Positions 1-47,020 of a stretch of 64,000 bases of DNA are shown here, piece after piece. Origin of the DNA: Takakia lepidozioides (lineage: Eukaryota > Plantae > Bryophyta); NCBI GenBank assembly GCA_030704615.1, contig CM060731.1, positions 82,894,001 through 82,958,000 of the forward strand, read 5' to 3'. The first letter of the stretch is position 1, and each line of letters begins with the position of its first letter. The notes beneath the pieces were generated by a model. The model was not told the DNA's origin, did no database searches, and saw only the letters and a program-made list of their open reading frames with translations. The translations under genes were made by a program, and so were the position numbers.

Positions 1-29
1 CACTCTGCGTTGCTCAGCCATAGCCAAGC

Positions 30-975
30 TGATAATCCAGGTCAAGCAATTGAGATCCATTGCTTGCCCCAACACCTGACGACGTGATGCCTCAGAAAGA
101 GACGACATCGCCGTGGTACCAGTGGTAAAACCCATTGCCCGTTCACGCTCGTTAGCATTGGGCTCCACTAACTGCTGCAACTGAGCATCCCACAGGAGGC
201 CAGGTCCACTATCCCGGAAAGCATGCGATCCTGGGAAGCTGAGCAGTGTAGGTAATGTTGCTCGTGGTTGACCCACCCTGTTGAACACTGCCAAAGGCGA
301 ACGATCATCGTGTCTCACACGCTGAGACTGCCTCCTTGTGTCCAAAATGCTATCCACTGTGAGGTGTGTTGGGCGCTGCACCCCATCAAATGCACGCTTG
401 AGCAGTGCGGGTGGCATCAAGTTAGTCCACCATAGCCGTGGACGATGAGCCCGTGACCCCACTGCAGCTGCAACCAGCAACACTGTTGACCCAAGCCACG
501 ACCGGACTTGATGCACACTGGCCATCACCCTGGCCCAAGAATCGCCCATCAGTGGCACATTCTCCAAGATGTATGCTGGAGATACAGCTTGATGAAGCTA
601 CAAGTGGTGCAAAACCCGCACCATCTCCCAAAACAAACCCGACCTCGAGTCTCGCAATCCATTGTCATGCGGCTGATGAATGCTCTTGGCAGGGCCAACC
701 TGCCACTGCCAGATCAATGGAGCCAACCCGCTCCAAATCCTGCGCCCCCAGCAACGAAATGTCTGTTGGCAAGGCCTGCTGATATCCACGAACTGCAGAC
801 ACCGACAACAACTCAGGGTACTGCTGCACCAACTGAGCAACATGGTGAAGTGAAATGCGTCGTGTAGTCTCATCCCTCTCTACATACTAGTAACGCCGAA
901 CTCGTACATCTGCCTGTAACACAACAGCCAATCCGGTGTTGATCCCGCCAAACAAGTCCAGAAGACAAATGCCTT
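30..975 (-). pseudogene. DNMT3-like C5 cytosine methyltransferase domain of copy B (disrupted)
   Basis: ICLLDLFGGINTGL (motif I), DLVVAGWPCQ (IV), YILENV (VI), AHRPRLWWTNL (VIII), EPNANERERAMGF (IX) and RRQVLGQAMDL (X) are readable across frames. Stop codon at 887. Confidence 0.88.
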
Positions 976-3866: not shown

Positions 3867-4599
3867 CTCCGTGTTGACAAACTGTCACTCAACGGGTCAT
3901 GAACATGTCCCTAACCCCCTCTCTACAAGGTAACTGGGTAGAGAACCTGTTGCGGCTTATGGTTTGGAATATTAGGTTCCTAACATAGCCTACATCTGCA
4001 CCTGCATCCACCGCAAGCACTCCTATGGTTGGCTGGTCATCACCTCCAACCTCACCATGGGAGAAACAATAATGGTCTGACTGGTCATCACCCCAGCCTC
4101 ACCATCGACAACATGCTCTAGGACTAGCCGGTGATCAAATCCGGACCAATCACCTATAAAAACAAGCGCCCACACAAAACTAACATGGCGCACAGTCAAG
4201 CATGCAGGTATGGAGGGGATCCAAACACAAGAAATCAGAACGACAACTCCCCCACACCAAAAACAACTCCACAGTGTTGCTCCTGCAAGGACACCCCAGC
4301 CCAAACCCGGACTGACTCTTGCCTCCACCTACGGAAAGGTCTTGGCCTAATGAGAGGGTGGAAAACTACGAGGAAGAGAAGCTAAAGCAATGCCTAACCC
4401 CAGCATGCCCTCATCCCAACACTCTTCCTCTCCTCTCTTCTCTCACTTGCATGACCATGGAAATATCATGAAGATATTCCTCAAACCGCCCTCCACGAGC
4501 TTCGAAATTTGGCCTTCAAGACCACATGCCAGTCCTCAAGTAGTCCACCAGTGCCTCCCCGAGTCAGCACATGCCGTCCATAGGTCAACATGCACCACA

Positions 4600-5130
4600 G
4601 ACCAGCACAGGCCCACATAGCCCCATAGGCCATAGGTCACAGCCTGTCACAGCCCGTCACAACCCCAAAGGCCACATGGCACAGCCTGTCACAGCCCTAT
4701 GTACACAGGTCCCAGGGGTCACAGTCCCGAAGGCCACAGCCCATCACAGCCTGTCACAGCCCGTCACAGCCCCACAGGCCACAGGGCACAACCTGTCATA
4801 GCCCGCCACAGCCCATCACAACCACTCACAGCCCGTCACAGCCAAAGGCCACAGGCACAGCTTGTCACAGCCCTACACAGGTCACAGGGGTCACAGCCCC
4901 AAAGGCCACAGCCTGTCACAGCCCGTCACAGCCCGTCACAGCCCCACAGGCCACAGGGCACAGCCTGTCACAACCCCTCACAGCCCATCACAGCCCCTCA
5001 CAGCCCGCCACATCCCATCACAGCCTGTCATAGCCCCTCACGGCCCCACAGGCCACAGACCACAGCCTGTCATAGCCCATCACAGCCCATCACAGCCCCA
5101 CAGGCCACAGGGCACAACTTGTCACAGCCC
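4600..5130. repeat. TCACAGCCY-based (about 9-nt unit) minisatellite in the copy B leader, about 0.5 kb
   Basis: Tandem tcacagccc/tcacagcct units interspersed with aggcca/gggcac spacers. Confidence 0.95.
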
Positions 5131-6593
5131 CATCCATGGCCATTCATGGCAGTTTAGCCATTTCTCCAAGGCGTTTAGCCACGCCAAACTAGGGTTTGTG
5201 TCTCTTGGACTCTAGGCTTCTTTGCACCGAGCTATGGCGGCTGTGAGGAAATCAGCAAGGTATTCTTGCTCTTTATGGCTCCCACGCACCACCAATAGTA
5301 GCTCTAATTCCAAAGGAAGATATTTGCAACCAAAACTAAGTGTACAAGCTTCCTTTTAACTCCCAAAACAGCGCCATTGATCCCTATGGCGACAAGTACA
5401 AGCCTTCAATAGGCTGAAAGCATGCTCCACACATGCATTGCCCTCACATAAGGGAAGTCAGCCCTTCCCTCTTCCTTGCTTGCCCTCCTAGCTTGAAGAT
5501 GGAAGCTTCAATGAGCTGAATACATGCTCCACACATGCAACCTCTTCACACAAGAGGTATCAGCCCCCTATCTTGGCTCCTTGGCTCCTTGGCTCCTTGA
5601 TGCTCTCTAAGACAAGACTAAGCACTCCACAGCCTTTGCCAAGCTCCTGAAACCCTAAGGCTTACATTTCCAACCACAAGACACTCCTCTTGTGGTGCAA
5701 GAGCTCTTCTTCCAAGCTCTGAAACCCTAGGTGCACATTCCATGGCCTTGCCGCACCTCTTAGCTCCTGTTCCAGCCCTGCTCTTGCCATGACAAGAGCC
5801 CTCTCAATGCTGAAGCTCGAGATTGAAACCCAATCTCACCATACTCCACAAAGTGCACTGATTTGCCCCAAGCCAAATCAACCCTTTCGCTTGGTCTTGC
5901 AGTCCTTCACACAATGAAAGCTCGCATTCCCAAGTCCAGTTCTCAGCTTTGCCACCAAAGCCACTATAACCTGCTCTTGACTGGTCCTCTTCCCAATCGT
6001 GCTTGCTCATGCTTGTACACAATCTGAAACCATCAAGGTGCTCTGGAATTACCTGCAGCATGGTGCTTTCATCTGTGAAACTGAAGATCGAATGCCAAGG
6101 TCTACTACCTCGTAACCCACATCGCCTCCGCTTCTACAACCAAGAGCTCCACGGTGCTCCTTGCATAACAACCTGGTTTCTTTCATTCTCAAGCAAAAAC
6201 CACAAGTGCTACAACTAACTCGTATCTGGCACTCACAGATACGAGCTCATCTTTCTCAAGTGATAAAGAAGAAGAATACAAGCACAAGCTCATGCGAGCT
6301 CACAAAGCTGAAGCATAAACTCATGCATATATAACCTCATCACTCAAATACAAGTCAAGCCAAGTGCACCCCACGCCATGGGGAATCCACACTACGGCGC
6401 CATAGCTAGGCGCGGTGAGGCTCAACTCGAGAAAGATGAGCCTCTCGCGTTTGCCGTGAAGATAACCACTCCAGGGCCTAAATCTGCCTTGACCCCTGGA
6501 TTGACACTTGGGCCAATCCCAAATGTCAATATGTAAACGCTAGCTATTTCCTAGCTAGTTTCACACTAGTGGTAAAATAACTTGACATTCATC

Positions 6594-6785
6594 ATGTCGT
6601 TTGGACAAGGATCAAAGAACAATGGGGGAGAAGTCTCAGAGACTAACACGTTAGTTGGACAATCTAACTTTGTTGTGTGGAAATTCAAAGTCCACAATCT
6701 GTTGCTAAGAGATGAAATTGCTCATACTGTCGAGAAAGATTTTGAGGTCACCGATAAGAACAGGGCATTGTTGTTCGAGAGATAG
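6594..6785 (+). pseudogene. Ty1/copia gag N-terminal fragment
   Basis: LVGQSNFVVWKFKVHNLLL matches the copia Gag LxGxNY/FxxWKxKMxxLL start. Copy B inserted just upstream of its ATG. Confidence 0.6.
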
Positions 6786-6789
6786 AAAC

Positions 6790-8232
6790 GTAGAACACTT
6801 TGTCACTCATAGATGAATGAGACATTGTTGTGCATATCCTGCTGTTTGCCTATCGAACCTCTATTCATGCCAGTATCAAAATTTCTCCTTTTGAACTTTT
6901 ATATGGTAGGAAATGTAGAACTCATTTGCATATCTCTTGGCTGCAGGTCTCCGCAACTGAGCCTGAAAATTTGGAAGTCTTTTTGTTTTCCATGGATGCT
7001 AGACGACGTAGTTTACATGAAACAGCTAAATCTAACATTGTGTTTGCCCAAGCTGCTCAGGCCAAGAATTACAACAGACGTGTTGTGTATTCTGAGTCAT
7101 TCAAGGTAGGCCAGTCTGTTTGTGTCAAGCTCCAGCCTGGTAAACAGGTACCTAAGGCCAAGCGTCAGATTGATGGCCCTTACCTGATCTCTGATATTCT
7201 TCCTGGCAGGCAGTATGTCTTGCTTCCCCAACATGTTTCTACCCCTCACTTAGCTAGCCCCATTCATGTTTCATTGATTGTTCCATGCACTCTTACTTTT
7301 GATCTAACCTGTTTGAATGTTGAGAATCGCCAGGTGATTTTCACCCCCACAGCTCGAACAGCTGGTGATCAGGCCCTGGCATCTTCTTCTTTAGCGTAGT
7401 TTTACATTTCGTGCTAGTTTTCTGCACCAATTGTAGCACTTGGGGCTTTTCCTATGGGATGTTTTGTCCTCCACCCAGCTTGCAGGGTGAGGGTTTCTTC
7501 CCTAGGTTTTTTCATCCTTTGTGTGCCAGGTGTGTAGTTTGTTTTTGCTAGGCCTCGTTTTTGTTCTTCCTGAGCTCATCGCTCGCAGGAGCTCGCAGTA
7601 TCTAGTGGCCCCAGCAGGCTTCACATATGTGGAGCTAGGATTCCTTCTCACCTTCTTTTTCGACTTGGATGAACGGAGGGGGGATGTGCCCCAGATGACT
7701 TAGGGATGGACGGAACCAGGATGAAGTCTGGATGAACTTACACCTTGCGCATGAGGATGAGTTGGCAACAACTTATGACTTTATTAGGTGTTGTCTTATT
7801 CTAACAGCTAGTTTAGGATTAGATTAGGATGGATCTGGGTGATCTGGCTTCTTTCTATGGCTATGCTGGAAGGGCATCTGGCTGGCCTATATGTAAGTGC
7901 CACGTGGCACTAGGATTAGATTACGACCTAATACTATTTAAGCTCCACTGCCGTGGCAGTTAGGGTGGTGGCTTTTGGATCTCACGCGAGTGTACGTTTG
8001 GTGTAACGGTGTGCTTGAGTGTGTTGATGAATGTGTTCTGGATGTTTTGACTTTGTTGTGTCCTCTTCGTGAGATTCCGTCTTCTCTGCCAAGCCCATCT
8101 ATCGACTATATCCCCCTTGATAGGATTAAGTCCGGTAGAGGAAGGAGAATAAACCCATAGCGCCGGAATCAATGGCTTCATAGACTTAACCAAACTATAG
8201 CAGAGTTTGGTTTTTGTTATTTGATTTAAATC
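6790..8232 (+). mobile_element. Unrelated Ty3/gypsy fragment: integrase C-terminus, PPT, LTR (about 7685-8192) and a degenerate PBS-like motif
   Basis: ORF 6830-7399 has LFAYRTSIHASIKISPFELLYGRKCR and a GPY motif (IDGPYLI). Purine tract GGAGGGGGGA then TGTGCC at 7685. TATAGCAGAGTTTGGTTT at about 8196 resembles an initiator-Met PBS. Confidence 0.75.
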
Positions 8233-8680
8233 TGTCGTGCGCATACATATCGCTACACAACTACATCGCTGTCCAAAACCACACAACACATGTGCACACC
8301 ACACACTAGTATACCACTAGTCTACCACTAGTCTAGCCACTAGTCCAACCACTAGGCTACAACTAGTCAGTCACTAGGCTGCCACTACGCTGCCCACTAT
8401 GGCAGTCACTAGTTCACACAATCGCCCCCCTAGCTGGTGCTTAGGTCCCTCTAAGTCCAGGTAGCCACAAGATGTGATAGTGACCATAGCCTCACTAAGT
8501 CCTCCACCACTATCCCTACTACACTCAAACTCGATAGATCAAGAGGCCGGGTGCAAGAGTTGCCCCATCGTTAGTCGTCGTCTTGCAACCTGTGAACTTG
8601 AGCTTGGGATCTCATGTATTGACTCCTATGAGCTTGGCCTCCCATGTCTTGTTAGCTGCCTCCAGTCATGTCCACTGCCA

Positions 8681-10228
8681 CTATCCCAAGCAGTGTGGAC
8701 ACAACCAATCTCCGTCAGGAACCTTCTCAAGAGGTGGTGTCAAGCATCCCATATGCCAACCCCTTGAGCATCGATCACACACCAGCATGGTGGCTGCCCC
8801 TTTGGCAGACCCACAGAGCATGCACCTCAAACCTGCAGGTACCACTGCCAAGTTTGGGTCAACTCTGCCATCGACATTGGGAAGGTGACATGGCGCACAA
8901 TTACGCACATGGTCCTTCCAAGTCATGCCATCCCGACCCTCCAAGATCAGGACCCCTGAGGGCAACACCTCTCGAACCCTCAGAATAACACGCCCTGCAG
9001 TAACATCCAGAGTCGTAGGAGCAGTCTGCTGCAAATAAACATAGTCACCAGGGCTAAACCTCCGAACCCCAGGACGATATCCTCCACCACGTATAGTGGC
9101 ATACCTCAACGTATCACGGTGCTGTGCAATGGCAAGGTTCTCAAAAGCCATGGGCATGACTTTCTTGAACAACTCTGCACGCTGATCACATGCACGTACC
9201 CACACGTCCGGATCGTCAAGGTTAAGGACTTGAGCAGTGTCCCTACGAATGGCTGCAGGCAAATCCGGCTCTCGGCCAAAGAGAAGGAAATATGGTGAGA
9301 AGGAGGCAAGTGATGCTTGTTTGCTGAACCTGTAGCCCATGGCTAACCAAGGAACCTGAAGATCCCAATCTCCTAGGTGTCCCTTCTGCAAGCCATACTT
9401 GCGCAAACCCCTCTTCACCGTCTGAACAACTCTCTCTGCTAAGCCATCGGCCTCAGGATGATCCCGAGAAGTGGTGCGGTGGTCGATCAAGGCTTTATCA
9501 CACAAAGCCTGAAACTCCCCCAAGAACTCTCTCCCTTGGTCCGTGAGTACCTCAGCTGGAGCACCAAATCGGCTAAGCACACGATCCAAGAATGCATACG
9601 CAGCCCCCTCACTAGCCTTGTCAGGCAATGGAACCAACTCAATCCACTTGGAGAAGTGCTCCACCATCACCAACACATATCTGTGGTGGCGCATAGTCAG
9701 TGGCAACGGTCCTGCGAAGTCAAGACTCCACCTGTAGCCCAATCCCATGATAGGTAAAGGATGCAACTGTGGTGTAGGGGCGTTGAATGAAGCACGCACC
9801 CTGTCACACACCATGCACCTAGCCACAAACTGTTGCACCTCTGTATGCATACCACGCCACCAATACTGCCCCTGCAGTAAACTGTGAGTGCGTCGCACTC
9901 CAAAATGCCCCAACTCCTCATGGGCATGCCGCACTAACCGTGCACGCTGTGTGGGGTGAGGCACAATCCTCACCCGACCACCCTCCCACACTCGAAGTAG
10001 GTGTATCCCCTCCCACTTGAACCTCTTGGCTCGTTGCAGGATCCGATCCCTCTCCCTGGCAGTCACAATGGCTGCCGTGTCTCCCGTGCGGAGGTAGTCC
10101 AACACAGCCGAATCCTCATGTATATCTCTGGCACCACCTAGCTCATCACTAGCCTCAGGGTCCTCAGACACTCCGTCTACAGTCATCCCTGTTGTAGGTC
10201 CAATCTGACCTCCCGATGCCAAGAACAA
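8681..10228 (-). CDS. Integrase (HHCC + DDE core) with C-terminal PHD finger; C-terminal part of the polyprotein, open frame
   Basis: HAHEELGHFG...CMVC; SLDFAG, LTDQG, GLAERV; terminal CMLC..CDRC..WHMGC..WLCPHC (C4HC3). Confidence 0.95.
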   Translation of the reverse strand: MFLASGGQIGPTTGMTVDGVSEDPEASDELGGARDIHEDSAVLDYLRTGDTAAIVTARERDRILQRAKRFKWEGIHLLRVWEGGRVRIVPHPTQRARLVRHAHEELGHFGVRRTHSLLQGQYWWRGMHTEVQQFVARCMVCDRVRASFNAPTPQLHPLPIMGLGYRWSLDFAGPLPLTMRHHRYVLVMVEHFSKWIELVPLPDKASEGAAYAFLDRVLSRFGAPAEVLTDQGREFLGEFQALCDKALIDHRTTSRDHPEADGLAERVVQTVKRGLRKYGLQKGHLGDWDLQVPWLAMGYRFSKQASLASFSPYFLLFGREPDLPAAIRRDTAQVLNLDDPDVWVRACDQRAELFKKVMPMAFENLAIAQHRDTLRYATIRGGGYRPGVRRFSPGDYVYLQQTAPTTLDVTAGRVILRVREVLPSGVLILEGRDGMTWKDHVRNCAPCHLPNVDGRVDPNLAVVPAGLRCMLCGSAKGAATMLVCDRCSRGWHMGCLTPPLEKVPDGDWLCPHCLG

Positions 10229-10289
10229 AAAATGCAGATGCGTGCCATCCCCGGCACCATCTCCTCGTCCGTCTCACACCATGCCAACC

Positions 10290-11730
10290 GAGCTCCAGTG
10301 TCATCCTGCTGGCTCATGCATGGATTGCGACTCAATCCATCCCCATCCCGATTGACCCAAACCGGTCGATGCACAACCTGAAAGTCATACTCCTGGAGTA
10401 TAAGTGCCCACCGTGCAAGCTTCCCGTAAGCTTGTCTGACTCCATCAACCACCTTGAGTGGCTGGTGATCCGTGACAGGGTGAAAAGATTGCCGTTATAG
10501 ATAGCACCTGAAGTGTACCACGGCCACACTGCCAGCTAAGCACTCTCCCTCATATGAGCTGTACTTAGCCTCTGCAGCGTTGTTTGAGCGGCTAGCGTAA
10601 GCCACTACGAACTCTCTTCCCTCATCATCCACCTGTGTGAGGCACCGCTCCAAGCCCCAGCATGCTCCAATCCGTAGGCAGTCTGAAAGGGACGCCCCAT
10701 GATAGGTCGTCTCAAGATAGGCGCCGAGGTCAACCTCGACTTGAGCTCTTGCAAAGCTCGTTCCTGTGTCATCTTCCCACTGCCACTCTGGTCACCTTGG
10801 TCAGCTTGGTTAGAGCCTTTGCAATGTTACTAATCCCTGACAAAACCGTAATAATAGTTTGCCCAACCAATGAAAGCTCGAACTCGCTCACATCCGTGGG
10901 GCGTGGAATTTGTGCAATGGCCTCTACCTTAGTCTGCTGTACCCCCAACCTCCAGGATATATCATGTGACCCAGATACTCAATCTGGTTGTGGAAAAACT
11001 TGCACTTCCCCGGATGCAACTTCAATCCGTGCGCTCTCAAGCGCTCCAATACCACCTGAAGGTGTCTCTCATGCTCCTCCATCGTAACACTAAAAGATGA
11101 TGATGTCATCTATGTAGCACCGAGCAAAGTCCACCCCTGCTAGAATCCTATCCATGACTCTCTGAAAACTCTGCAGGAGCATTCTTAAGCCAAATGGTAA
11201 GAACCGCCACTGATATAGGCAATCCTTGCCGTGCTCATGATCCCCCAGAATGCGTCTTCTGCTTGTCCGCCTCCTGATGGCAAATGGTGATATCCGGATC
11301 GTAATCCAAAGTGCTAAAGGCCTTAGCATGCCCGATGGCATCAAAGATCTCCTCTGGTGTTGGCATGGCATACTTATCGGACTTGTCTGACGATTTACAG
11401 GCCGGTAATCACCGCACATACGTCTCTCCGTCCAATTGCCATAGACATCCTTCTTGGCTGGCATCACTGTGGCTGAAGCATACTCTCCACCAGAGAGCTC
11501 CACCAAACCTGCCTCCCAGAGATCTTGAGTCCTCATCTGAATCAAAGACCTCTCCATGTCACTGTATCTATAGGGTCTCCGAAAGATTGGCGTGTCAGTG
11601 GCCAACTCAATACGGATCTCTTGACCCTTCAGTGCTCCCAAGTCCTTCAAACTGAAGGCAAAGCAATTCCTGTAAGCCTCAGGAACCGCGTATACGTCGT
11701 CTCTCTCCTCCGGTGACAATGGGTCCAATG
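10290..11730 (-). pseudogene. Reverse transcriptase and RNase H of copy A (many 1-nt indels)
   Basis: RMCGDYRPVN, LPFGL, FQRVMD, CYIDDIIIF, KCKFF, IEYLGH; RNase H TDWS..LGAV, AYASR, KLARWALILQEYDF. Confidence 0.93.
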
Positions 11731-12099
11731 TCAGGCTCCCAATTGTCCTCCGTAACTACAACCTTAAGTCCAGTGGGATTAGAGGTAGAGGACGCGTCCC
11801 GTGGTTGCTATGCTGCACCTCTTGAGCAGTACTTCCACCTGCTCAGTCAATGACAGGCATCATCCTGCCCATCATCTCATCCTTGAGGACCTCCTCAACC
11901 GAGAAGAATCCCCAACCTCATCCATCACAGCCGCCTTGGCTGCCAACTCCCTCTGAACCTCGAGCACCTCCCACGTGTGCCATGGATGCATGCACCCCGT
12001 GGTCCTCATATGCTCGCCCCCCTCACTGCCTGTACCGTCTCGGTAGGCAGAGAGACCATTGAGGGAAGTGTATTCCGCACTCTGCGTTGCTCAGCATAG

Positions 12100-13055
12100 A
12101 GCCAAGCTGATAATCCAGGTCAAGCAATTGAGATCCATTGCTTGCCCCAACACTTGACGACGTGATGCCTCAGAAAGACGACACCGCCGTGGTACCAGTG
12201 GAAAAACCATTGCCCGCTCGCTCGTCAGCATTAGGCTCCACTAACTGCTGCAACTGAGCATCCCACAGGAGGCCAGGTCCACTATCCCGGAAAGCATGCG
12301 ATCCTGGGAAGCTGAGCAGTGTAGGTAATGCTGCTCGTGGTTGACCCACCTTGTTGACCACTGCCAAAGGCGAACGGTCATCGTGTCTCACACGTGAGAC
12401 TGCCTCCCTGTGTCCAGAATGTTATCCACTGTGAGATGTGCTGGCCGCTGCACCCCATCAAATGCACGCTTGAGCAGTGCGGGTGGCATCATGTTAGTCC
12501 ACCATAGCCGTGGACGATGAGCCCGTGACCCCACTGTAGCTGCATCTAGCAACACTGCTGACCCAAGCCACGACGGACTGATGACACACTGGCCATCACC
12601 CTGGCCCGAGAATCGCCCATCAGTGGCACATTCTCCAAGATGTATGCTGGAGATACAGCTTGATGAAGCTGCAAGTGGCGCAAAACCCGCACCATCTCCC
12701 AAAACAGACCCGACCTCGAGTCTCGCAATCCATTGCCATGCCCGGCTGATGAATGCCCTTGGCAGGGCCAACCTGCCACTACCAGATCAATGGAGCCAAC
12801 CCGCTCCAAATCCTGCGCCCCCAGCAACGAAATGTCTGCTGGCAAGGCCTGCTGATATCCACGAATTGCAGACACCGACAACAACTCAGGGTACCGCTGC
12901 ACCAACTGAGCAACATGGCGAAGTGAAACGCGTCGTGCAGTCTCATCCCTCTCCACATACAGGTAACGCCGAACTCGTACACCTGCCTGTAACACAGCAG
13001 CCAATCCGGTGCTGATCCCGCCAACAAGTCAGTCCAGAAGACAAATGCCTTCATC
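12100..13055 (-). pseudogene. DNMT3-like C5 DNA methyltransferase domain embedded in pol of copy A (frameshifted)
   Basis: Non-permuted motifs: ICLLD-LFGGISTGLAAVL (I), RYLYVE (II), DLVVAGWPCQGHS (IV, catalytic PC), GLFWEMVRVL (V), YILENV (VI), GSRAHRPRLWWTN (VIII), EPNADER..MGF (IX), RRQVLGQAMDL (X). A 4-nt duplication near 13030 and other small indels break the frame. Confidence 0.92.
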
Positions 13056-13399
13056 CGGAGACTGCCACACAATAGGTGTGGTGTCCAATGGAGACAATTG
13101 AGGTGGTCCTGGTGCAATCCCCACACTCTCCTCCTCTCCTGACGGTACAAAAGCCTCCACCCAGGCTTGTTGCACCCGTCGATCAGCATCCGCTGCAAAT
13201 CCTTGCTCGTGCCCCACAATGGAGTCTGAGCAACCATGGTAGGCAACTCCGCCATACCATACATGTCATCCTGCTCTCCCGGAGGTGGTACATCCTCTGA
13301 ATGAGCATTGCCCTCAAGCAACTCTCTAGGCCAACTCACTGCCGCTGTGAATGCTGCTAGTGTCGGCATCTTGCCTCGCTGGGCAACCGCAACTCCTCC

Positions 13400-13830
13400 T
13401 ATGAACGTCACAGGGAGCTGCACACGCCGGCCCTCCCCTGACTGCCATGCAGGCCTATAGGAAGCTGACTCCTCCCAAAAATCCAGGGTGAAGCCCATGG
13501 GGTACAACACTGCCCCACCAACCAGGACATCGTATGAGACTGCGTCTGTCACAATGGCCTTGGCTCGCATCACTGAGCCATCTGTAGGGTGATCCGGCCG
13601 TAGTCTGATAGCCAACTCATGCCGTGTCATGCCCCGAGCCTGCTCCGATCCTCCCAGAGACGTCTGTATCTGGAAAGGACAAGGCTCCATATCCGCCTCC
13701 GTGAGGCCCAAGCCTGCAATAGCAGCTCTGCCCAGCATCAGTGGCTGAGCTCCCGAGTCCAACAAGACTCGCAGTGGCCGGTACCTCTTGCCTGCCGGTC
13801 CACTCAAACAGAAAATGCCATCCTGGTTGT
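13400..13830 (-). CDS. Retropepsin-type aspartic protease domain of copy A (within ORF 12779-14875)
   Basis: RVLLDSGAQPLML and YDVLVGGAVL motifs. Confidence 0.88.
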
Positions 13831-14561
13831 CTAACATGACAACTCCAGGTGTCACCATGGCGCGCTCAATGGCTGGCCTAGCTGGCAGCTCCATCAACCT
13901 GGCAGCTGCAGCTTGCCATGGCGCCGCCGTGGCAGTCTTGACCCTCAAATCCGAGGATCCCTCCGGCACTACACCTCCCACTATCTCCGCAGAAGATGAA
14001 GTAACCTCCCCACTCTCACAGAGTGTAGCTGCCAGCCTGAACACCTCAGCTGGTCTTACCCCCGGCGTCGCAATCATGGTAGCCGAGAACAATGGAGCCT
14101 GGCACACAGATGTGGCCGCTCCTAGCAGCACACTAGCTGCCGTAGCCTTGGCAACACTAGGTAGTGGTGCTACCCGTGTAGCTCTCCCCAATGGCATAGT
14201 GACCTCCGCCTCGGTAACAGTCGGGCGAGAACTAGGTGCCATGGATGGCGTCGACACTGTCTCCGCCAATGTGAATGACTGAGGAAGCCTAGCCTGACGG
14301 CTTGCCTCCCCACGCTGTGGATCCAACTCCACCTCTGCACCTCGTGGCTCAGGAACTCGTGCTGCTCCTCGAGTCACGGCTGCAGCAGACTCCACCTGCA
14401 CTAGTGGTAGTGCTGCTCCACACATGAATCCCATGCCTCCCATATCTCCTCCCTCAGGAGCAGGAGGTGGACCATCCGGCCTTAGAGCCGGTACCACCTG
14501 AGCTGTAGCCATGGCAGCGAGCCTCTGCTCTAGCTGCTGAAGCCGGTTGGCCATGCCTTGG

Positions 14562-15968
14562 TCAACACCCTGACCTCCGCGTCCTTGGCCACGTTGAGCT
14601 TGCCCTTGGCCTGCACCTGTGGCTGGCCACCTCGTCCCCTCTGGGCTGCTCCACCTCGCCCCGGCCACCATTGTTCCCTTGGAACTGGCCTGGGCGCAAC
14701 TCAGGATGCAAACCATAACACTGAGCCTCTCCATGCCCGTGTTTGCCACAATGCCCACACTGTAACTGTGCAGGCTGTGCATGTGCCGGCCCTTTGCCTC
14801 CCTCTGGACAATCCTTCTTGACATGGGGTCCTCCACATGTCCAGCACACCACATCCGCCCGTTGTTGGCCAGCAAATGAAGGGAGAGACCCCTGCATCTG
14901 AGGTCCTCTCTGCCCTTCCCTGAGCTTCACCTGAGCCCCCTTGTTGCCTTGAGCACGTTGAGGTAGTGGTTGGCTAGGAGCACCACTACCCCGTGGTGTC
15001 TCCTTAGCAAATCCCACCATGACCACTCGTTCCTCCACCATGTTGAGCTCTATCCGCTCTGCCAGCAAAAACACATTTGCTAAGGTGGGTTGGGCCGCTT
15101 GTAGGAGAGTTGCATCCCGCACCCTTCTCCTCAGCTCCTTGTCCAATATCCCATACCAGAATTGGACTGCCTGAGCTTCCGTAACCCCTTGGGTTACATT
15201 TATCAAGCGCCTCATGCGAGTGAAAGCCTCCCTCAAGCTCTCGGTCGGCTTCCGTTGGAACTCTTGCAAGCTCCGCAACTTCTCTGTCCTCACCCCTTGG
15301 TAGTTCCCTCTCAACTCTTCGAAGAACTCCACAACAGGGTTGAAGGCAGGCACGGGTGCTAGTGCTGGTGCGGTAGTGGCTTGGGTGGACGTCGTAGCTA
15401 CTGTACCACCAGTCCCACTGCTGCTTGCTGAAGCTGCCGGTGCAGCGGCAGGTGTAGCCACTGCCCTCGTGGCTCTAGTGCCCCTAGTGATGGAGACATA
15501 GTCGGGTGACCAGTACATCCTCCACTCCTCGATCTCAACCTCATGCCCCCGCCTGAACTCATGGTAATCATCCATAGGCGGCCCCTCAAGGTGCTGAAAC
15601 AGCCCTTTCCATGCCATGAACGGCGTAAATAGTTGTGGATTGCGCATTTGCTGCAAATCACACCAACTATCAAACTCTTGGATAAAATCATCCAACTCAA
15701 TGGTGCCCACCGCCCCAGAGTACCTTCGTGGCCCCTTGGTAGCTCCATACATCTCCTCCATTGTGTCCCACAACAATGGCAAAGAAACAACTTGCACCGC
15801 CGGTATGAGTCCTCCCGATTCACAATCCGAATCAGAACCTTCCGTAGAAGACACAGGAGGTGAAGGTGGCCTAAACCGCACACCTCGTCTCGTGTACCCA
15901 CTAGTATCGCTAGTGCTCGAACCGGCACTGTCCCCAGCAACTAGTGGCACCTCCGTGTTGACACTCAA
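14562..15968 (-). CDS. Gag of copy A with two zinc knuckles and an RGG/Gln-rich tail; frameshift near 14630 relative to pol
   Basis: FQRKPTESLREAFTRM (major-homology-like), CWTCGGPHVKKDC and CGHCGKHGHGEAQC. True start codon uncertain. Confidence 0.88.
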   Translation of the reverse strand: MSVNTEVPLVAGDSAGSSTSDTSGYTRRGVRFRPPSPPVSSTEGSDSDCESGGLIPAVQVVSLPLLWDTMEEMYGATKGPRRYSGAVGTIELDDFIQEFDSWCDLQQMRNPQLFTPFMAWKGLFQHLEGPPMDDYHEFRRGHEVEIEEWRMYWSPDYVSITRGTRATRAVATPAAAPAASASSSGTGGTVATTSTQATTAPALAPVPAFNPVVEFFEELRGNYQGVRTEKLRSLQEFQRKPTESLREAFTRMRRLINVTQGVTEAQAVQFWYGILDKELRRRVRDATLLQAAQPTLANVFLLAERIELNMVEERVVMVGFAKETPRGSGAPSQPLPQRAQGNKGAQVKLREGQRGPQMQGSLPSFAGQQRADVVCWTCGGPHVKKDCPEGGKGPAHAQPAQLQCGHCGKHGHGEAQCYGLHPELRPGQFQGNNGGRGEVEQPRGDEVASHRCRPRASSTWPRTRRSGC

Positions 15969-16689
15969 CCGGTCATGAACATGTCCCTAACCCCCTCTTC
16001 ACAAGGTAACCGGGTAGAGAACCTGTTGCGGCTTATGGTTTGGAATATTAAGTTCCTAACATAGCCTACACCTGTACCTGCATCCACCACAAGCACTCCT
16101 ATGGTTGGCTGGTCATCACCTCCAACCTCACCACAGGAGAAACAATGATGGTCTGGCTGGTCATCACCCCAGCCTCACCATCGACAGCATGCTCTAGGAC
16201 TGGCCGGTGATCAAATCCGGACCAATCACCTATAAAACAAGCGCCCACACAAAACTAGCATGGCGCACAATCAAGCATGCAGGTATGGAGGGGATCCAAA
16301 CACAAGAAATCAGATCGACAACTCCCCCACACCAAAAACAACTCCACGGTGTTGCTCCTGCAAGGACACCCCAGCCCAAACCCGGACTGACTCTTGCCTC
16401 CACCTACGGAAAGGTCTTGGCCTAATGAGAGGGTGGAAACTACGAGGAAGAGAAGCTAAAGCAATGCCTAACCCCAGCATGCTCTCATCCCAACACTCTG
16501 CCTCTCCTCTCTATCCTCACTTGCATGACCATGGGAATATCATGAAGATACTCCTCAAACCGCCCTCCACGAGCTTCAAAATTCGGCCTTCCAGACCACA
16601 TGCCAGTCCTTAGGCAGTCCACCAGTGCCTCCACGAGTCAGCACAGGCCGTCCACAGGTCAACACGGGCCACCACAGACCAGCACAGGC

Positions 16690-18290
16690 CCACACAGCTC
16701 ACTGGTCAGGCCGTCACAGTCCCACAGGCCACTGGGCACAGCCTGTCGCAGCCCCTCACAGCCTGTCACAGCCTCAAAGGCCTCAGGCACGGCCTGTCAC
16801 AGCCCCTCACAGCCCCTCACAGCCTCAAAGGCCTCAGGCACGGCCTGTCACAGCCCCTCACAGCCCGTCACAGCCCATCACAGCCTGTCACAGCTTGCCA
16901 CAGCCCATCACAGCCCGTCACAGCCTCAAAGGCCTAGGGCACGGCCTGTCACAGCCCCTCACAGCCCCTCACAGCCTCAAAGGCCTCAGGCACGGCCTGT
17001 CACAGCCCCTCACAGCCCGTCACAGCCCCAAAGGCCATGGGCACGGCCTGTCACAGCCCCTCACAGCCCGTCACAGCCCCAAAGGCCATGGGCACGGCCT
17101 GTCACAGCCCCTCACAGCCCGTCACAGCCTCAAAGGCCTCAGGCACGGCCTGTCACAGCCCTCACAGCCCGTCACAGCCCCAAAGGCCATGGGCACAGCC
17201 TGTCACAGCTCGCCACAGCCTGTCACAGCCCATCACAGCCCCATAGGCCTCAGGGCACAGCCTGTCACAGCCCCGCACAGCCCGTCACAGCCCCAAAGGC
17301 CACTGGGCACAGCCTGTCACAGCCTGACACAGCCCGTCACAGCCCCACAGGGCACAGGGCACAGCCTGTCACAGCCCATCACAACCCATCACAGCCGGTC
17401 ACAGCTTGCCACAGCCTGTCACAGCCCGTCACAGCCCCACAGGCCACAGGGCACAGCCCGTCACAGCCCGTCACAGCTCGCCACAGCCTGACACAGCCCG
17501 TCACAGCCCCACAGGGCACAGGGCACAGCCTGTCACAGCCCCTCACAGCCCGTCACAGCCCCAAAGGCCTCAGGCATGGCCTGTCACAGCCCCAAAGGCC
17601 ACTGGGCACAGCCTGTCACAGCCTGACACAGCCCGTCACAGCCCCACAGGGCACAGGGCACAGCCTGTCACAGCTTGCCACAGCCTGTCACAGCCCGTCA
17701 CAGCCCCACAGGCCACTGGGCACAGCCTGTCACAGCCCGTCACAGCCCCAAAGGCCATGGGCACAGCCTGTCACAGCCCGTCACAGCCCCACAGGCCTCA
17801 GGGCACAGCCTGTCACAGCCCCGCACAGCCCGTCACAGCTCGCCACAGCCTGACACAGCCCGTCACAGCCCCACAGGGCACAGGGCACAGCCTGTCACAG
17901 CCCCTCACAGCCCGTCACAGCCCCAAAGGCCTCAGGCACAGCCTGTCACAGCCCGTCACAGCCCCAAAGGCCACTGGGCACAGCCTGTCACAGCCTGACA
18001 CAGCCCGTCACATCCCCACAGGGCACAGGGCACAGCCTGTCACAGCCCATCACAGCCCATCACAGCCTGTCACAGCCCGTCACAGCCCCACAGGCCACTG
18101 GGCACAGCCTGTCACAGCCCGTCACAGCCCCACAGGCCTCAGGGCACAGCCTGTCACAGCCCCGCACAGCCCGTCACAGCCCCAAAGGCCACTGGGCACA
18201 ACCTGTCACAGCCTGACACAGCCCATCACAGCCTGTCACAGCTTGCCACAGCCCGTCACAGCTTGCCACAGCCTGTCACAGCCCCACACA
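16690..18290. repeat. TCACAGCCY-based minisatellite in the copy A leader, about 1.6 kb with higher-order units
   Basis: Continuous tandem array; about three times longer than the equivalent array in copy B. Confidence 0.97.
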
Positions 18291-21200
18291 TGGCCGCTCT
18301 GGCAGTTTAGCCATTTCTCCAAGGGGTTTAGCCACGCCAAGCTAGGGTTTGTGTCTCTTGGACTCTAGGCTTCTTTCCACCGAGCTATGGTGGCTGTGAG
18401 GAAATCAGCAAGGTATCCTTGCTCTTTCGGCTCCCACACACCACCATAGTAGCCCTAAGCCATGAGGTGGTTGCCACAAACCAAGCCTTCTTTCTCACTT
18501 AGCCTCCCCAAACACGCCACTAAACTCAATGGCAAACAACCAAGCCCTGCTGGTTCCCAGCCCTTGTGAGCACTCATTCAAGCACTCCCCTCATTGGCCA
18601 TAGCATCTGTCTTAGAGCCTATTCCAGCCCTCTACACCTGTTGCTTCAAGAGTTGCGCTCCCTTCAAGCTTGAAGTTAGGCCCTACAAGTGCTGTTCTTT
18701 CACTCCAAGTGGAAACCAGCCCTAGACCTTCCGTTCTAGCTCTCTAAGGCTTGAAAACAAGAGCCTCAATGGGCTGAAGGCATGCTCCACACATGCCCCA
18801 CTCTCACCATAAGAGAATCAGCTCCTTTGCTTCATTTCTTGCACCCACAAACCTGATAATACAAGCTTCAGCAGGCTGAAAGCATGCTCTACATGCCCTA
18901 CAGGGAAACCAGCCCCTTCCTTCCTTTCTTGCACTCCCACACCTAAAAGTGCAAGCCTTCACCAGGCTGATAGCATGCTCCACACATACATTGCCCTCAC
19001 ATAAGGGAAGTCAGCCCTTCCCTCTTCCTTGCTTGCCCTCCAAGCTTGAAGATGGAAGCTTCAATGAGCTGAATACATGCTCCACACATGCAACCTCTTC
19101 ACACAAGAGATATCAGCCCCCTATCTTGGCTCCTTGGCTCCTTGATGCTCTCTAAGACAAGACTAAGCACTCCACAGCCCTTGCCAAGCTCCTGAAACCC
19201 TAAGGCTTACATTTCCAGCCACAAGACACTTCTCTTGTGGTGCAAGAGCTCTTCTTCCAAGCTCTGAAACCCTAGGTGCACATTCCATGGCCTTGCCGCA
19301 CCTCTTAGCTCCTGTTCCAGCCCTGCTCTTGCCATGACAAGAGCCCTCTCAATGCTGAAGCTCGAGATTGAAACCCAATCTCACCATACTCCAAAAAGTG
19401 CACTGATTTGCCCCAAGCCAAATCAGCCCTTTCGCTTGGTCTTGCAATCCTTCACACAATGACAGCTCGCATTCCCAAGTCCAGTTCTCAGCTTTGCCAC
19501 CAAAGCCACTATAACCTGCTCTTGACTGGTCCTCTTCCCAATCGTGCTTGCTCATGCATGTACACAATCTGAAACCATCAAGGTGCTCTGGAATTACCTA
19601 CAGTATGGTGCTTTCATCTCTGAAGCTGAAGATCGAATGCCAAGGTTTACCACCTCGTAACCCACATCGCCTCCGCTTCTAACAACCAAGAGCTCCACGG
19701 TGCTCCTTGCATAACAACTTGGTTTCTCTCATTCTCAAGCAAAAACCACAAGTGCTACAACTAACTCGTATCTAGCACTCATAGATACGAGCTCATCTTT
19801 CTCGAGTGATAAAGAAGAAGAATACAAGCACAAGCTCATGCGAGCTCACAAAGCTGAAGTATAAACTCATGCATATATAACCTCATCACTCAAATACAAG
19901 TCAAGCCAAGTGCACCCCACGCCATGGGGAATCCACACTACGGCGCCATAGCTAGGCGCGGTGAGGCTCAACTCGAGAAAGATGAGCCTCCCGCGCTTGC
20001 CGTGAAGATAACCACTCCAGGGCCTAAATCTGCTTTGACCCCTGGATTGACACTTGGGCCAATCCCAAATGTCAATATGTAAAAGCTAGCTATTTCCTAG
20101 CTAGTTTCACACTAGTGGTAAAATAACTTGACAAATCTTTCAAATTGAACTTGATGCCATCATATGCGCAAACATGACACATAAATACATCGTGATGGTG
20201 CAACTTGCTTCCGCGGTTTTTTGAGTGAACTCTTATCTCCGCCGTGTTAAGTTTTGCGTTACGTGTGTCTATCTCATCGTGCGAGTTGTGAAATCTTAAG
20301 AGTTGTAGGTTGCCGCTGTCAAATTGAGCTATCATTACCAACAAACAAAAATTTGGAAAGCAAACATCAATTGTGAGACTGGCCATGTTGGCTGAAGCTG
20401 GAGTCTTGTCTACCCTGACCTCTCCTTGGTTCAAAATGTTAGTCTTCCCAAGTGAATATAGTTTTGGCCAAACTGACTTTGCGATTTAGTCATTGACTGC
20501 AGGAATAGCAATGGTGTGTGTTTGCTGGTGGACATACTCACATCACCAAGTGGGCTGAAAACCATACAGTACAGGTCTTTGGCTAATTCGTTTCTAGAAC
20601 TAGCCAGAATGAACTAGCAAAACAGTGGCTTCATATGTGTGAAGCAAGAACAGGTCGGACCTGTAACATCAAAAAGATCACCACTGGTGGAGTAATGCTT
20701 GCAACTGTAGTCTAGAGAGACCAGCTTTTGCAATGGTGTACACGAAGGTGCATATCCCTGACTCCCACCACCTAGTCGTGTGAGTTGCAAAGCATGTTAG
20801 CAGTGTTAGCATGTTAGCAATTTCCATGCTTTTTACAGCATGGTTCTTCCATATTCCAGTCTTCTCACTACAGAATCCAAGCTTATCATTTCAAGTACGA
20901 GAGGAGAAACAAAGAAATCATCGAAGGAGAGAGACAAATGCAAATGCCTTATCTACTACATTTCGGTGCACCCCTCCTCATATCACAGAAGTTCAATTTC
21001 TGTCAAGTAACAAAACAATGTCATCATCTCCTTTCTGGTTCTTCTTGGGACTAGACATACACATATGGCAACCAGAGATATGCGTTCCTTCTGTCATGCC
21101 TTCCACTTAAACCACTGGAAAGAATGAAGACACTTTTCCTGCGCTACACTAATATGCTACAGACCCAAGTCATTCCTAGCCTCTTCAAGGGTTCAGTTGT

Positions 21201-21498: not shown

Positions 21499-24129
21499 CT
21501 AAGAAATCCGTCTTAGACCCAAGTAGGCTGCTTCGATAACAAGTCGATGGATTGAATGGGTAAAGACCACAGCATCTAGTCTCTCTATCAGCAACCACAC
21601 CTCATTGGAGTACTCCCTGGAGATTGCTTGGAGATAGCCCAGTGTACACCGACGCCATTGCTGCTCTTCTTCCGCTTTGGAATGAACTTTAATTTCTGTC
21701 CCATTCGCTGACCGTTGGTTCCTTCGATTTCCTTTCCCCTCGGCATTGAGATCATCGGCTTCCACATCTGTAGGGCCCCCAGCAACCGCCTCCACACCCC
21801 CTGCAACAACATCACCAACCGCTGAGTCTTCAACATCTGGCAATGATCTGGAGAGCCGCTCCGTCAACAAATCTGCAAAGCTTTGGTACACGGCCAAAAA
21901 TAGTGCCTCTTGTTCATGCAGTGCCCGGGCAAGAAGAGCCTCCTTAGATTCCAGAGTTTCTTGTGCTGAGGTCTCTTCATCCTTCGCTTTGTCAGCCACA
22001 GTCTTAGCCCAGTCAGCTTTGGAGTTGAGGGGAGAACGAGTTTCATCACTCTTTGCCCCCTCTGCTACTGCAACCGCTGCATCCCACTTGGCCTGGGCTT
22101 TTTCTGTTGAGGCACTTGCTGTTTTAAGCCCCTTTTCAGCAGAGGCCACCTCCCGTCTCAAATCAACTGTGCGGTTATTTGTTTTATTGATAGCATTTCT
22201 AAGAATCTCCCAGACCCGATCTGAAGTGTGGAATTGGTCAACATTGTCAGGACCAAAAACCCAGGCCACAATAGCCAGATTGGAAACCATGCGGTACCCC
22301 ATCATCCTATCAACGACAATTGCAGTCATCTGGGCTGAGTTCTTCCAGAGTCCTGCCACAGCTTCTACCATCGCTGTTTGGTATACCTGATCAGGGGCTA
22401 TCTTCCTCAAAATTTGGCCATACTTTTCCAGCACAGTTACAGTGTGTGTAAAGCTCTTGGACCCAATGTAGAGGAGGGTCTGCACAACGACGTCAATTGC
22501 CACTTTCTGCCCATGTGGCAGTATAATCCGCTCATCAATCCAAACCTGAATCTCGCGCACAGTTTTCTTGCCCCTAACCATCCCAGTCAGCTCAGTGGAA
22601 AGTGCTATTTCCACCTCTGAAACCTCTCCCCGACTCTCTACACCATATTTGAACGAGGGTGTGTTTTTAGGTGGAAGGAGATCCAAAAGCTTTGGTGTGG
22701 AGGCCACACTTTCTTTGATTTTGTCCCAATAAGCTAGTCGAACCTCCTTCTCCAACACTTCCCTTGCAAAGACACGCTGTGGTGCCCACTTGGGTTGGTC
22801 TAATACATGTGCCCATTCCTCCCAGGGCCAAACAAACTGGAAGTTTGAGAGATGGTGGGAAAGCCATTGGACAAGCCGCGCGCGGCACTCCACATCCATC
22901 TCGGCCACGCGGTTGAAGAGAGCCCGGACGCCGCCAGCTACGACAGCAGGGAATGCCCCAGGAAGCGCTTTGCAGAGATCGACCATCACAACAGTGTAGT
23001 AGATTAGCCGGAAGGGAGGATTTGGGAGCAAAAGCAGTTGCGAGAAGACTGTCTCGGCCATCAAATATTCGTAGCGGAAAGGAACTGGCAGGCCCACCAT
23101 GAATGCAGCACACTCCTTGCGACAGCCATTGAGGTAGAAAAGCACATCAAGAAGATACTCTTCCACCACAAAACGATCGATAGGGGCGATTTTCTCATCA
23201 GTTTTCGATGGTGGAAAGATCCGAAGACGCATGTTCCGTCGAGGATACTTCTGTTCTGCTTCTTGCCGCTGCCTTCCAATGGATATGTCTGTTGGAGTAC
23301 CAGGTGGTTTAGGTGTCTCCGGGACAGATAGAGGACCAAAGTCATGGCTCTGATTTGTGGCCAAGCGCGATTCAAATACTAGATGAGGCCTTGGAACACT
23401 GTCTACCTTCCAGCCACTTTCAATAAGAACCTGGATGCGCGACCACAAGTCCTCTAAGTCCTCCAGATTATCCTCCTGGTCGGCACTTACGTCGTTTCCA
23501 TTTTCCCTCTCAGGTTTGCGGAAGACAGAAAGACAGGAGTAAGTTGTGCGTTTCCGCAGGTTCAAGTAAGCCTCCACGCCATTCAAGACTCGTTCCAGCT
23601 CCTCTGGCACGCGCTCAGCAAGCTCCATCCCACCCCACGGCAAAGAAGCTAGAATGCAGAAGACGTAAAAATCTGCCCGTGCCTGCCACGCCGGGTTGCC
23701 ACCATCCTCATCAATCGTGGTGGCCGCAGACGACACGAGAGTCTCAAAGACTTCAATAAGGGACCCGGGCGCTATCACATTGCTACACATGAGTACGGTG
23801 AGGAATCGGGTGAGAATCCGCAACTTGTTGCAGTTATCTGTGTCCAATGCCTCCTGCATTCCCCCGTGAGTCTGGCTCACAACTTTCGCCACAAAGTCAG
23901 CCTCTTCAAGATTGATCAACCCCACCACCGTCCCGTAGAGGGGGTCCTTGTGTGGCAACTCCTCCACACATTGCATCAACAATGCTAGAATCTCACTCCC
24001 ATTTTGCTGCAAATCTCGAACCAGGTAAGTGTAGCAGGTCTCAATGTGGTCTTCGGCATCCGCATGGCCCCCGTACTCTGGGCACCTCTCGCCAATCCTC
24101 ACAAGCAGCGAATGCCAGCTAGTGCTCAT
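21499..24129 (-). CDS. CBP80: Nuclear cap-binding protein subunit 1 (CBP80/ABH1/NCBP1), 876 aa, single coding exon
   Basis: MSTSWHSLLVRIGERCPEYG, ELPHKDPLYGTVVGLIN, PIDRFVVEEYLLD, LSHHLSNFQFVWPWEEW and IGSKSFTH are typical plant CBP80 MIF4G-repeat motifs. Uninterrupted ORF. Confidence 0.96.
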   Translation of the reverse strand: MSTSWHSLLVRIGERCPEYGGHADAEDHIETCYTYLVRDLQQNGSEILALLMQCVEELPHKDPLYGTVVGLINLEEADFVAKVVSQTHGGMQEALDTDNCNKLRILTRFLTVLMCSNVIAPGSLIEVFETLVSSAATTIDEDGGNPAWQARADFYVFCILASLPWGGMELAERVPEELERVLNGVEAYLNLRKRTTYSCLSVFRKPERENGNDVSADQEDNLEDLEDLWSRIQVLIESGWKVDSVPRPHLVFESRLATNQSHDFGPLSVPETPKPPGTPTDISIGRQRQEAEQKYPRRNMRLRIFPPSKTDEKIAPIDRFVVEEYLLDVLFYLNGCRKECAAFMVGLPVPFRYEYLMAETVFSQLLLLPNPPFRLIYYTVVMVDLCKALPGAFPAVVAGGVRALFNRVAEMDVECRARLVQWLSHHLSNFQFVWPWEEWAHVLDQPKWAPQRVFAREVLEKEVRLAYWDKIKESVASTPKLLDLLPPKNTPSFKYGVESRGEVSEVEIALSTELTGMVRGKKTVREIQVWIDERIILPHGQKVAIDVVVQTLLYIGSKSFTHTVTVLEKYGQILRKIAPDQVYQTAMVEAVAGLWKNSAQMTAIVVDRMMGYRMVSNLAIVAWVFGPDNVDQFHTSDRVWEILRNAINKTNNRTVDLRREVASAEKGLKTASASTEKAQAKWDAAVAVAEGAKSDETRSPLNSKADWAKTVADKAKDEETSAQETLESKEALLARALHEQEALFLAVYQSFADLLTERLSRSLPDVEDSAVGDVVAGGVEAVAGGPTDVEADDLNAEGKGNRRNQRSANGTEIKVHSKAEEEQQWRRCTLGYLQAISREYSNEVWLLIERLDAVVFTHSIHRLVIEAAYLGLRRIS

Positions 24130-40800: not shown

Positions 40801-41313
40801 AAGCATGGCAGGAGGCATTTCCATTGGTGAGTGAGGGGAGTTCAGTGACATCACCTGGACCTCCTGAGTTAGCTCCTTTGGACACATTGCCCATTACCTG
40901 GCAACCACCTGACTCAGGGATTTGTTCGCTAGACCTGTTTGGAAGCATAAGCACTGGGCTTGCAGGAGTGTTGCAAGCAGGGATTAAAGTACACAAGTAC
41001 TTGTATGTGGAGAAGGATGAGATAGCTCGGCGTATTTCTATGCGCCACATCGCCTTGCTCACACACCGATATCCTAAGTTGTTGCCTCTCTCAGCAATTC
41101 AAGGGTATCAAAAGGCCTTGCCTGCAGACATTACCTTGCTGGGGGCGGATGATTTGGACCGGCATGGTGCCATTGACTTGGTGATAGCCGGATGGCCTTG
41201 CCAAGGACACTCTCCCGCATGTCATGGGAATGGCTTGCATGATGCACGATCGCATTTGTTTTGGGAGATGTTGCGAGTGTTGCGGGACTTGCAGACGAGG
41301 CAAATGCAACCTC
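37893..41313 (+). mobile_element. Copy C of the DNMT3-retroelement family (second subfamily): leader, gag mostly deleted, protease, MTase motifs I-V, 3' truncated
   Basis: Starts TGTCATGGTTTT like copy D. ORF 39690-40634 has VLLDSGAQ; ORF 40794-41321 has SLDLFGSISTGL and DLVIAGWPCQGHS. Homology to D ends at 41313. Confidence 0.9.
39075..39480. repeat. GGATGAA-anchored tandem array (about 19-nt subunits, about 76-nt higher-order unit) at the deletion junction in copy C
   Basis: About 20 GGATGAA(A/C) cores at 17-21 nt spacing; GGATGAAACTGCGCCAG recurs after 76 nt. Confidence 0.9.
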
Positions 41314-46887: not shown

Positions 46888-47020
46888 TCATGGGAACAGT
46901 CACCAAAATGTGGGAACTGTCACCGTAGTCTGGGAACCGTCACCGTAGTTTGGGAACCGTCACTGTAGTTTGGGAACGGTCACCGTAGTCTGGGAACGGT
47001 CACTATAGGCTGGGAACATA
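46888..47020. repeat. 20-bp tandem repeat TGGGAACCGTCACCGTAGTY (6-7 copies) in the copy D leader
   Basis: Directly visible at 20-nt period. Confidence 0.93.

Follow-up and report, generated by a model that had tools for sequence, protein, structure and literature searches.

A frameshifted Gypsy-DNMT3 element of Takakia lepidozioides as the probable reduced copy of a family with permuted long terminal repeats

How can a Gypsy element possess an integrase, TG...CA ends and a target duplication but no pair of long terminal repeats (LTRs)? This question is raised by a 64,000-nucleotide stretch of Takakia lepidozioides DNA (assembly GCA_030704615.1, contig CM060731.1, positions 82,894,001 to 82,958,000 of the forward strand; hereafter the window), which holds four related element copies, A to D. 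Among these, only copy A has reverse transcriptase (RT), integrase and a 3' end inside the window, and its structure was analysed together with relatives from other genomes and from metagenome contigs. We consider it probable that copy A is a genuine, old and frameshifted Ty3/Gypsy insertion of the Gypsy-DNMT3 kind in the reduced form A-PBS-internal-PPT-B, where A and B denote terminal modules, PBS a primer-binding site and PPT a polypurine tract, and that the complete form from which it derives, A-PBS-internal-PPT-B-GC-A-B, arose and lost one of its two tails by the routes proposed below.

Copy A occupies 8233-20133 on the minus strand, opens with TGTCAAG at 20133 and closes with GCGCACGACA at 8233. 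Sequence inspection located the target duplication AATC at 20134-20137 on the 5' side and at 8229-8232 on the 3' side, so that the TGTC...GACA ends and the duplication stand exactly where an earlier sequence-only reading of the window had placed them; the terminal inversion comprises 4 bp only (TGTC/GACA). A reading with a tail one base shorter and a duplication of 5 bp, AATCT, was discarded, as the other copies show exactly 4 bp. At the 3' end, the tract GGGGGGCGA (8430-8422, minus strand) directly precedes module B, a tail of 188/189 bp (8233-8421, minus strand, with its start at 8421 or 8420) that marks the start of U3 in terms of reverse transcription and contains an expanded array of 7.5 11-bp units of the CACTAG type (8304-8387). 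The PPT-like tract and 188-bp segment of CCACTAG-type repeats described previously are thereby confirmed, as is the claim that this segment has no counterpart in the leader: a word-7 blastn search of the tail against the leader and the rest of the window returned no more than a match of 37 bp at 73% identity. At the 5' end, the 3-4 kb leader of the earlier reading exists, but it is not a single unit. It consists of module A (~326 bp, 19808-20133, minus strand, its inner boundary set from the position of the PBS), the PBS (19791-19807, minus strand) and a long 5' untranslated region (15969-19790, minus strand) holding a 52-bp CACAGCC minisatellite (16707-18288). The minisatellite recurs in inverted orientation, at 72-78% identity, at 61833-62153 near the window end. 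No paralogue of the flanks of copy A was found within the window, and no reading frame crosses the joined flanks.

Pfam scans of the minus-strand open reading frames (ORFs) of copy A revealed the Ty3/Gypsy order, with gag followed by a pol region carrying RT, RNase H and an rve-type integrase. The gag-like ORF (468 aa, 14562-15968) gives a weak Retrotrans_gag match and is kept in copies B and D. A 698-aa ORF (12779-14875), which forms the N-terminal portion of pol ahead of the methylase, has no Pfam match in copy A, while its 715-aa counterpart in a related ENA contig (L002) combines a weak aspartic protease match with DNA_methylase; a protease was thus undetected by Pfam in copy A and only weakly detected in this relative. 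Between gag and RT lies a frameshifted C5 cytosine DNA methyltransferase domain (12388-13004; PF00145, E 3e-13), for which matches of a 152-aa fragment to PDB sequences cover only the generic C5 motif-IV region and do not set the DNMT subtype. The RT (10924-11728) is split by frameshifts, with RVT_1 found on two pieces, and RNase H (10495-10772) is split over two frames (RT_RNaseH/RT_RNaseH_2). The integrase ORF (515 aa, 8681-10228) comprises an H2C2 zinc finger, the rve core and a C-terminal PHD finger, and no match to a tyrosine recombinase (Phage_integrase) was obtained on the ORFs scanned. Copy A is frameshifted and dead. The nearest named relatives of the integrase-PHD protein are found in liverworts (Calypogeia fissa, where identity reaches 82% across 75% of the query, Riccia and Marchantia), followed by Sphagnum, Klebsormidium nitens (52-56%) and green algae; E values against K. 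nitens proteins range from 1e-195 to 1e-135, which denotes kinship at the level of sequence similarity.

Comparison with these relatives revealed two forms of the element. The complete form, A-internal-PPT-B-GC-A-B, was seen in four loci, namely in Calypogeia (L003), the ENA contig (L002), K. nitens (L017) and Riccia (L018). Here, the first ~330-440 bp of the 5' end (module A) and the tail (module B) recur once after the first tail, the two B modules are near-identical and lie ~330-450 bp apart, and the dinucleotide GC stands between ...CGACA and TGTCA... in 4/4 loci. In the Calypogeia locus, A measures 341 bp and B 99 bp, A1 and A2 are 99.4% and B1 and B2 100% identical, and GTCA flanks the whole unit. 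The reduced form, A-internal-B with a target duplication, is represented by copy A (AATC), a second Calypogeia copy (L001, CCCC) and a metagenome copy (L004, AGGT), and in none of the three does a repeat join both element ends. The chromosome-scale Calypogeia assembly contains both forms. All four full copies in which both ends are readable, in other words the three reduced copies and the complete Calypogeia locus, carry a 4-bp duplication. The same G-run as in copy A adjoins B in both Calypogeia copies, the ENA contig, K. nitens, Riccia and the metagenome family, the TGTCA/CGACA termini are constant from the alga Klebsormidium to liverworts, and the last ~40 nt of the Riccia tail are almost identical to those of copy A, with similar sequences in the Calypogeia tails. 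In the reduced metagenome copy, a second palindrome, GACA-GT-TGTCA, was observed at ~12090-12120, ~80 bases before the true 3' end, and is possibly what is left of a B|A junction.

These comparisons place the family among Ty3/Gypsy elements with regard to its TG...CA termini and short (4-6 bp) target duplication, whereas two identical terminal LTRs are absent and complete relatives instead end in A...B-A-B. The order A-coding-B-A-B is present in relatives including the K. nitens locus, while copy A itself shows only A...B; its ends share nothing because it has the reduced form A-PBS-internal-PPT-B. The earlier statement that there is no LTR pair therefore stands for copy A, but not for the family. 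The sequence-only reading had also pointed to other copies with the long leader as a normal 3' LTR as evidence that would speak against it: the leader occurs as a 3' LTR in no copy among the window copies and relatives examined, although the repetition of A and B partly answers to the spirit of that test. Its suggestion of a family with dissimilar termini and non-canonical replication agrees with the recurrence of TGTC...GACA ends and 4-bp duplications from Klebsormidium to liverworts, while its alternative of a recombinant of two elements was rejected.

The positions of the putative priming sites bear on the unusual repeat order. An inverted-repeat search of the first 520 bases of each 5' end, in which the longest pair was compared with 300 shuffles each for copies A, C and D, the complete Calypogeia copy and L019, revealed that the longest inverted repeat always pairs a segment ~150-180 bases inside A with a site starting at the end of A. 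In copy A, the pair spans 17 nt (19987-19971 with 19807-19791), the PBS being the exact complement of a segment inside module A, and no shuffle out of 300 reached this length. Pairs of 13 nt in copy C (0/300) and 12 nt in copy D (1/300) were found, as well as 12 nt in both Calypogeia copies (0/300 for the complete one) and 10 nt in the metagenome locus L019 (15/300). Across copies B, C and D, the two Calypogeia copies and L019, the homologous pairs covary, so that the sequences differ and complementarity is kept. By analogy with Tf1, we read this complementary pair as the signature of self-primed reverse transcription. With a tRNA-type primer site at TGGCGCCGTAGTG, ~186 nt from the 5' end, the element would have had two dissimilar LTRs of 185 bp each. 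This site was rejected, as its sequence is not kept at copies C and D and the complete Calypogeia locus, and the covarying self-priming pair accounts better for the region. Just after the PBS, short perfect hairpins of differing sequence were observed in copy A (19785-19760, minus strand) and in the complete Calypogeia copy (~4135-4165), which may represent a conserved RNA structure near the priming site.

Module A ends exactly at the PBS start and module B starts exactly after the PPT. As the PBS directly follows A and the PPT directly precedes B, U5 ends where A ends and U3 starts with the first base beyond the G-run, the arrangement expected of Ty3/Gypsy elements, and for the same reason the LTR as defined by reverse transcription is B-GC-A. 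In addition, the A2|B2 joint of complete copies consists of the last base before the PBS and the first base after the PPT (Calypogeia, K. nitens and Riccia loci). The genomic copies would thus be a circular permutation of an ordinary LTR-internal-LTR molecule, opened at the B|A palindrome (...ACGACA-GC-TGTCA...), which looks like two abutted integrase ends.

To these loci, a scan of metagenome contigs for the tail end added 79 loci, most of them from one abundant related family. With respect to tail-end context, the integrase end was followed by B and then a junction to A in 9 cases, and by B and then flank in 10, of which at least L021 and L024 are one locus; A was followed by B and flank in 39 cases and by B and a junction in none. 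Transitions aside, the B|A joint does not vary, its dinucleotide being GC (L019, L061, L094), AC (L074, L093) or AT (L038, L039, L062, L091, L048). This variation presumably reflects transitions at a CHG site; the AT shared by several contigs may mean either that the junction tolerates change and the variant is inherited via RNA, or that one locus was recovered in several samples. The A|B joint, on the other hand, is variable, usually precise, and at three loci carries 9-15 extra bases matching the PBS and at one the PPT end. Joined cDNA (complementary DNA) ends typically show variable joints with PBS or PPT remnants, and the remnants seen here would fit such an origin. Short A-B units flanked by non-element DNA were also found; among nine distinct units, the 4-bp duplication is perfect in five and departs from identity by a single transition in another two. 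Aberrant A|B joints are commoner in these short units than in the second tails of complete copies.

From these observations, the following cycle can be proposed. The RNA would start inside the first A and end at the end of the second A. Minus-strand synthesis would be self-primed, the RNA 5' segment pairing with the site directly after A, a step for which complementarity and covariation are at hand, and plus-strand synthesis would start at the G-run directly before B. From these two start sites, standard strand transfers would give a cDNA with ordinary LTRs of the composition B-GC-A. Its ends would then be joined, the end of A to the start of B, with which the variable A|B joints and their PBS and PPT remnants are consistent. 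Finally, in the upstream LTR, integrase would nick each strand of the palindrome ...ACGACA-GC-TGTCA... behind its CA, as the observed termini and duplications suggest; the resulting CA ends would be recessed in the standard way, and the target duplication would measure 4 bp. Recombination of one B repeat with the other, a counterpart of solo-LTR formation in which the duplication is kept, would subsequently have removed A2-B from copy A, and recombination between the two A modules would likewise yield short A-B units. Since it lacks a 3' A, copy A can no longer make a complete RNA.

Several points weigh against this scheme. Where the transcript starts and stops, the joining of the cDNA ends and the cut by integrase are all reconstructed from sequence, and the inner boundary of module A is placed only by analogy in copy A. 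The metagenome contigs are short-read assemblies, in which jumps across the repeated B may inflate the B-then-flank counts, and some of them represent the same locus from different samples. The difference in divergence between complete and reduced forms is small, and some of the contigs compared may be one locus. Furthermore, no A-B-A-internal-B copy was found: in the metagenome loci, 0 B ends preceded by A lead into a junction, compared with 9 preceded by the integrase end. The scheme consequently needs an unexplained preference for the upstream junction. A symmetric two-LTR circle that opens at either palindrome is disfavoured by the same absence, as it predicts A-B-A-internal-B to be as common as A-internal-B-A-B. 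The stronger proposition that the family integrates obligatorily via joined-end cDNA, with integrase opening the CA-GC-TG palindrome in the upstream LTR of a molecule that is circular or end-joined rather than acting on the cDNA ends, and that this IS3/IS30-like circle-junction route extends from charophyte algae to liverworts, is put forward tentatively and is in our view somewhat doubtful.

The most serious competitor concerns only the last step. Copy A may have integrated directly as A-internal-B, either from a linear cDNA, with integrase acting at the B|A junction of each LTR, or from a one-LTR circle by way of its single junction, with no later deletion. The recurrence of the reduced form with a perfect duplication in three genomes would be expected if this were so, the ten contig matches in which B runs from the integrase end into flank point the same way (L021 and L024 counting as one locus at least), and the enrichment of aberrant A|B joints in short units hints that some of these are primary products. 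Recombination between close direct repeats, however, gives the same structure without a second integration route, assembly artefacts may have affected the metagenome counts, and slightly greater divergence and a tendency to stronger decay set the reduced copies apart from the better preserved complete ones, although this is weak evidence. We therefore regard direct integration as unlikely, and as less likely than B-B recombination, while taking it more seriously than any of the explanations that follow.

An assembly artefact, in which the true locus reads A-internal-B-GC-A-B and the two identical tails were collapsed, appears improbable. The near-identity of B1 and B2 and their short spacing in relatives would favour such a collapse; yet both forms stand side by side in the chromosome-scale Calypogeia assembly, the tail of copy A meets its matching 4-bp duplication cleanly, and a collapse of ~500 bp is unusual for long-read assemblies. 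Still less credible is the view that copy A is a conventional LTR retrotransposon that had its 3' LTR removed or exchanged, and that the AATC match is due to chance. A single 4-mer match has a chance of ~1/256 per register and the window is a nest of broken elements, but 4-bp duplications accompany 4/4 full copies of different genomes, three of them outside Takakia, and five of the nine short A-B units, both termini are precisely conserved across species, and the leader serves as a 3' LTR in no copy found. For these reasons, the chance match considered in the sequence-only reading was rejected. A Ginger-like cut-and-paste DNA transposon or a DIRS/Ngaro-type tyrosine-recombinase retroelement, suggested by the TGT ends and 4-bp duplications in the former case and by an A-internal-B-A-B order that recalls the split direct repeats of PAT/Ngaro/TOC1 in the latter, can practically be dismissed in view of the RT, RNase H, gag, PBS and PPT, a terminal inverted repeat of only 4 bp, a recombinase that is a DDE integrase (rve plus H2C2) with no Phage_integrase match on the ORFs scanned, and the target duplications. 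Target duplications are not known from tyrosine-recombinase retroelements, whose insertion presumably proceeds by recombination.

The remaining copies in the window share the 5' end of copy A, as had been claimed for TGTCA. Copy B (1-6587, minus strand) is 92-97% identical to 12078-20133, stops at the same base as copy A with an identical 24-mer at 6587, has a different flank beyond it, and continues at its 3' part beyond the window. Copies C (37893-41313, plus strand) and D (45118-51490, plus strand) are diverged relatives truncated after the methylase; both open with TGTCATGG, and comparing the window with itself shows that these starts coincide with the onset of C-D mutual homology. Copies A and B are embedded among nested, broken elements. 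The 1.6 kb between them (6588-8232) holds fragments of other elements, including an ORF (6830-7399) with a motif typical of the end of an integrase core, and a short ORF at 6582-6785 that resembles a retrotransposon gag start. On the same strand and 1.4 kb upstream of copy A, an uninterrupted 876-aa ORF (21499-24129, minus strand) contains MIF4G, MIF4G_like and MIF4G_like_2 domains, an architecture that corresponds, by its predicted domains, to the nuclear cap-binding protein CBP80/NCBP1. The plant CBP80/NCBP1 gene has many introns, and an intron-free ORF of such size suggests a processed retrocopy.

Overall, the paradox of a Gypsy element that lacks an LTR pair in spite of its integrase, TG/CA ends and duplication can be explained without a new element class. 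Five sequence constraints bear on the mechanism: the PBS after A, the PPT before B, the palindrome at B|A, which is invariant, the A|B joint, which varies and holds primer remnants, and the lack of an A-B-A-internal permutation. If the joined-end intermediate proves true, the family would be a natural case of a route long held to be a dead end for retroviruses, and the interest of the system rests on this integration route. For genome annotation, finders based on LTR pairs will miss or mis-bound these abundant bryophyte elements.

Copy A is a reduced, dead copy of an already described, poorly understood kind of element. The legend of Fig. 4c in the account of KnitGypsy-Dnmt3 from K. nitens (de Mendoza et al. 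2018, PMC5890265) mentions a DIRS-like repeat arrangement together with Gypsy domains, and 'streptophytes (Gypsy-DNMT3)' are named in a passage of a 2026 preprint (bioRxiv 10.64898/2026.05.21.726589). Like KnitGypsy-Dnmt3, copy A has the Ty3/Gypsy domain order with a C5 methylase inside pol, and the K. nitens locus analysed here has the same PPT-B-GC-A-B end and CGACA/TGTCA termini; unlike it, copy A resides in a land plant rather than an alga and in the reduced A-internal-B form. The papers found, which cover the literature incompletely, contain no description of the termini, duplication, priming site or mechanism of Gypsy-DNMT3 elements, and the ones proposed here were worked out from sequence alone.

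With respect to priming, the closest parallel is Tf1 of fission yeast, which carries two identical terminal LTRs of the ordinary kind and uses the ends of its cDNA for integration. As in Tf1, the presumed RNA 5' segment, given the RNA start proposed above, is the exact complement of the site that immediately follows the 5' repeat, and the Gypsy-DNMT3 family shows no tRNA-type TGG site; in contrast to Tf1 with its identical terminal LTRs, the integrated copy is permuted. Self-priming of LTR retrotransposons has been summarised previously (PMC5006619). Ginger elements share the Gypsy-type integrase, the TGT ends and the 4-bp duplications, but they have long terminal inverted repeats and neither RT nor gag, so that the comparison drawn in the sequence-only reading fails for copy A with its gag, RT, RNase H, PBS and PPT and its terminal inverted repeat of 4 bp.

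PAT/Ngaro/TOC1-type elements encode a tyrosine recombinase. The Gypsy-DNMT3 family shares with them the repeat order A1-internal-B1-A2-B2 but differs in its DDE integrase, TG...CA ends and 4-bp duplications, and thus pairs a DDE integrase with a repeat order otherwise reported from tyrosine-recombinase retroelements; TOC1 of Chlamydomonas has been called a non-autonomous DIRS element (PMC9940879). A palindrome with 2 bp between CA and TG is likewise found in retroviral two-LTR circles and in the abutted ends of the bacterial IS3/IS30 elements. Retroviral two-LTR circles are dead-end by-products, whereas in the Gypsy-DNMT3 family the abutted-end palindrome sits in every LTR and appears to be the normal site of integration.

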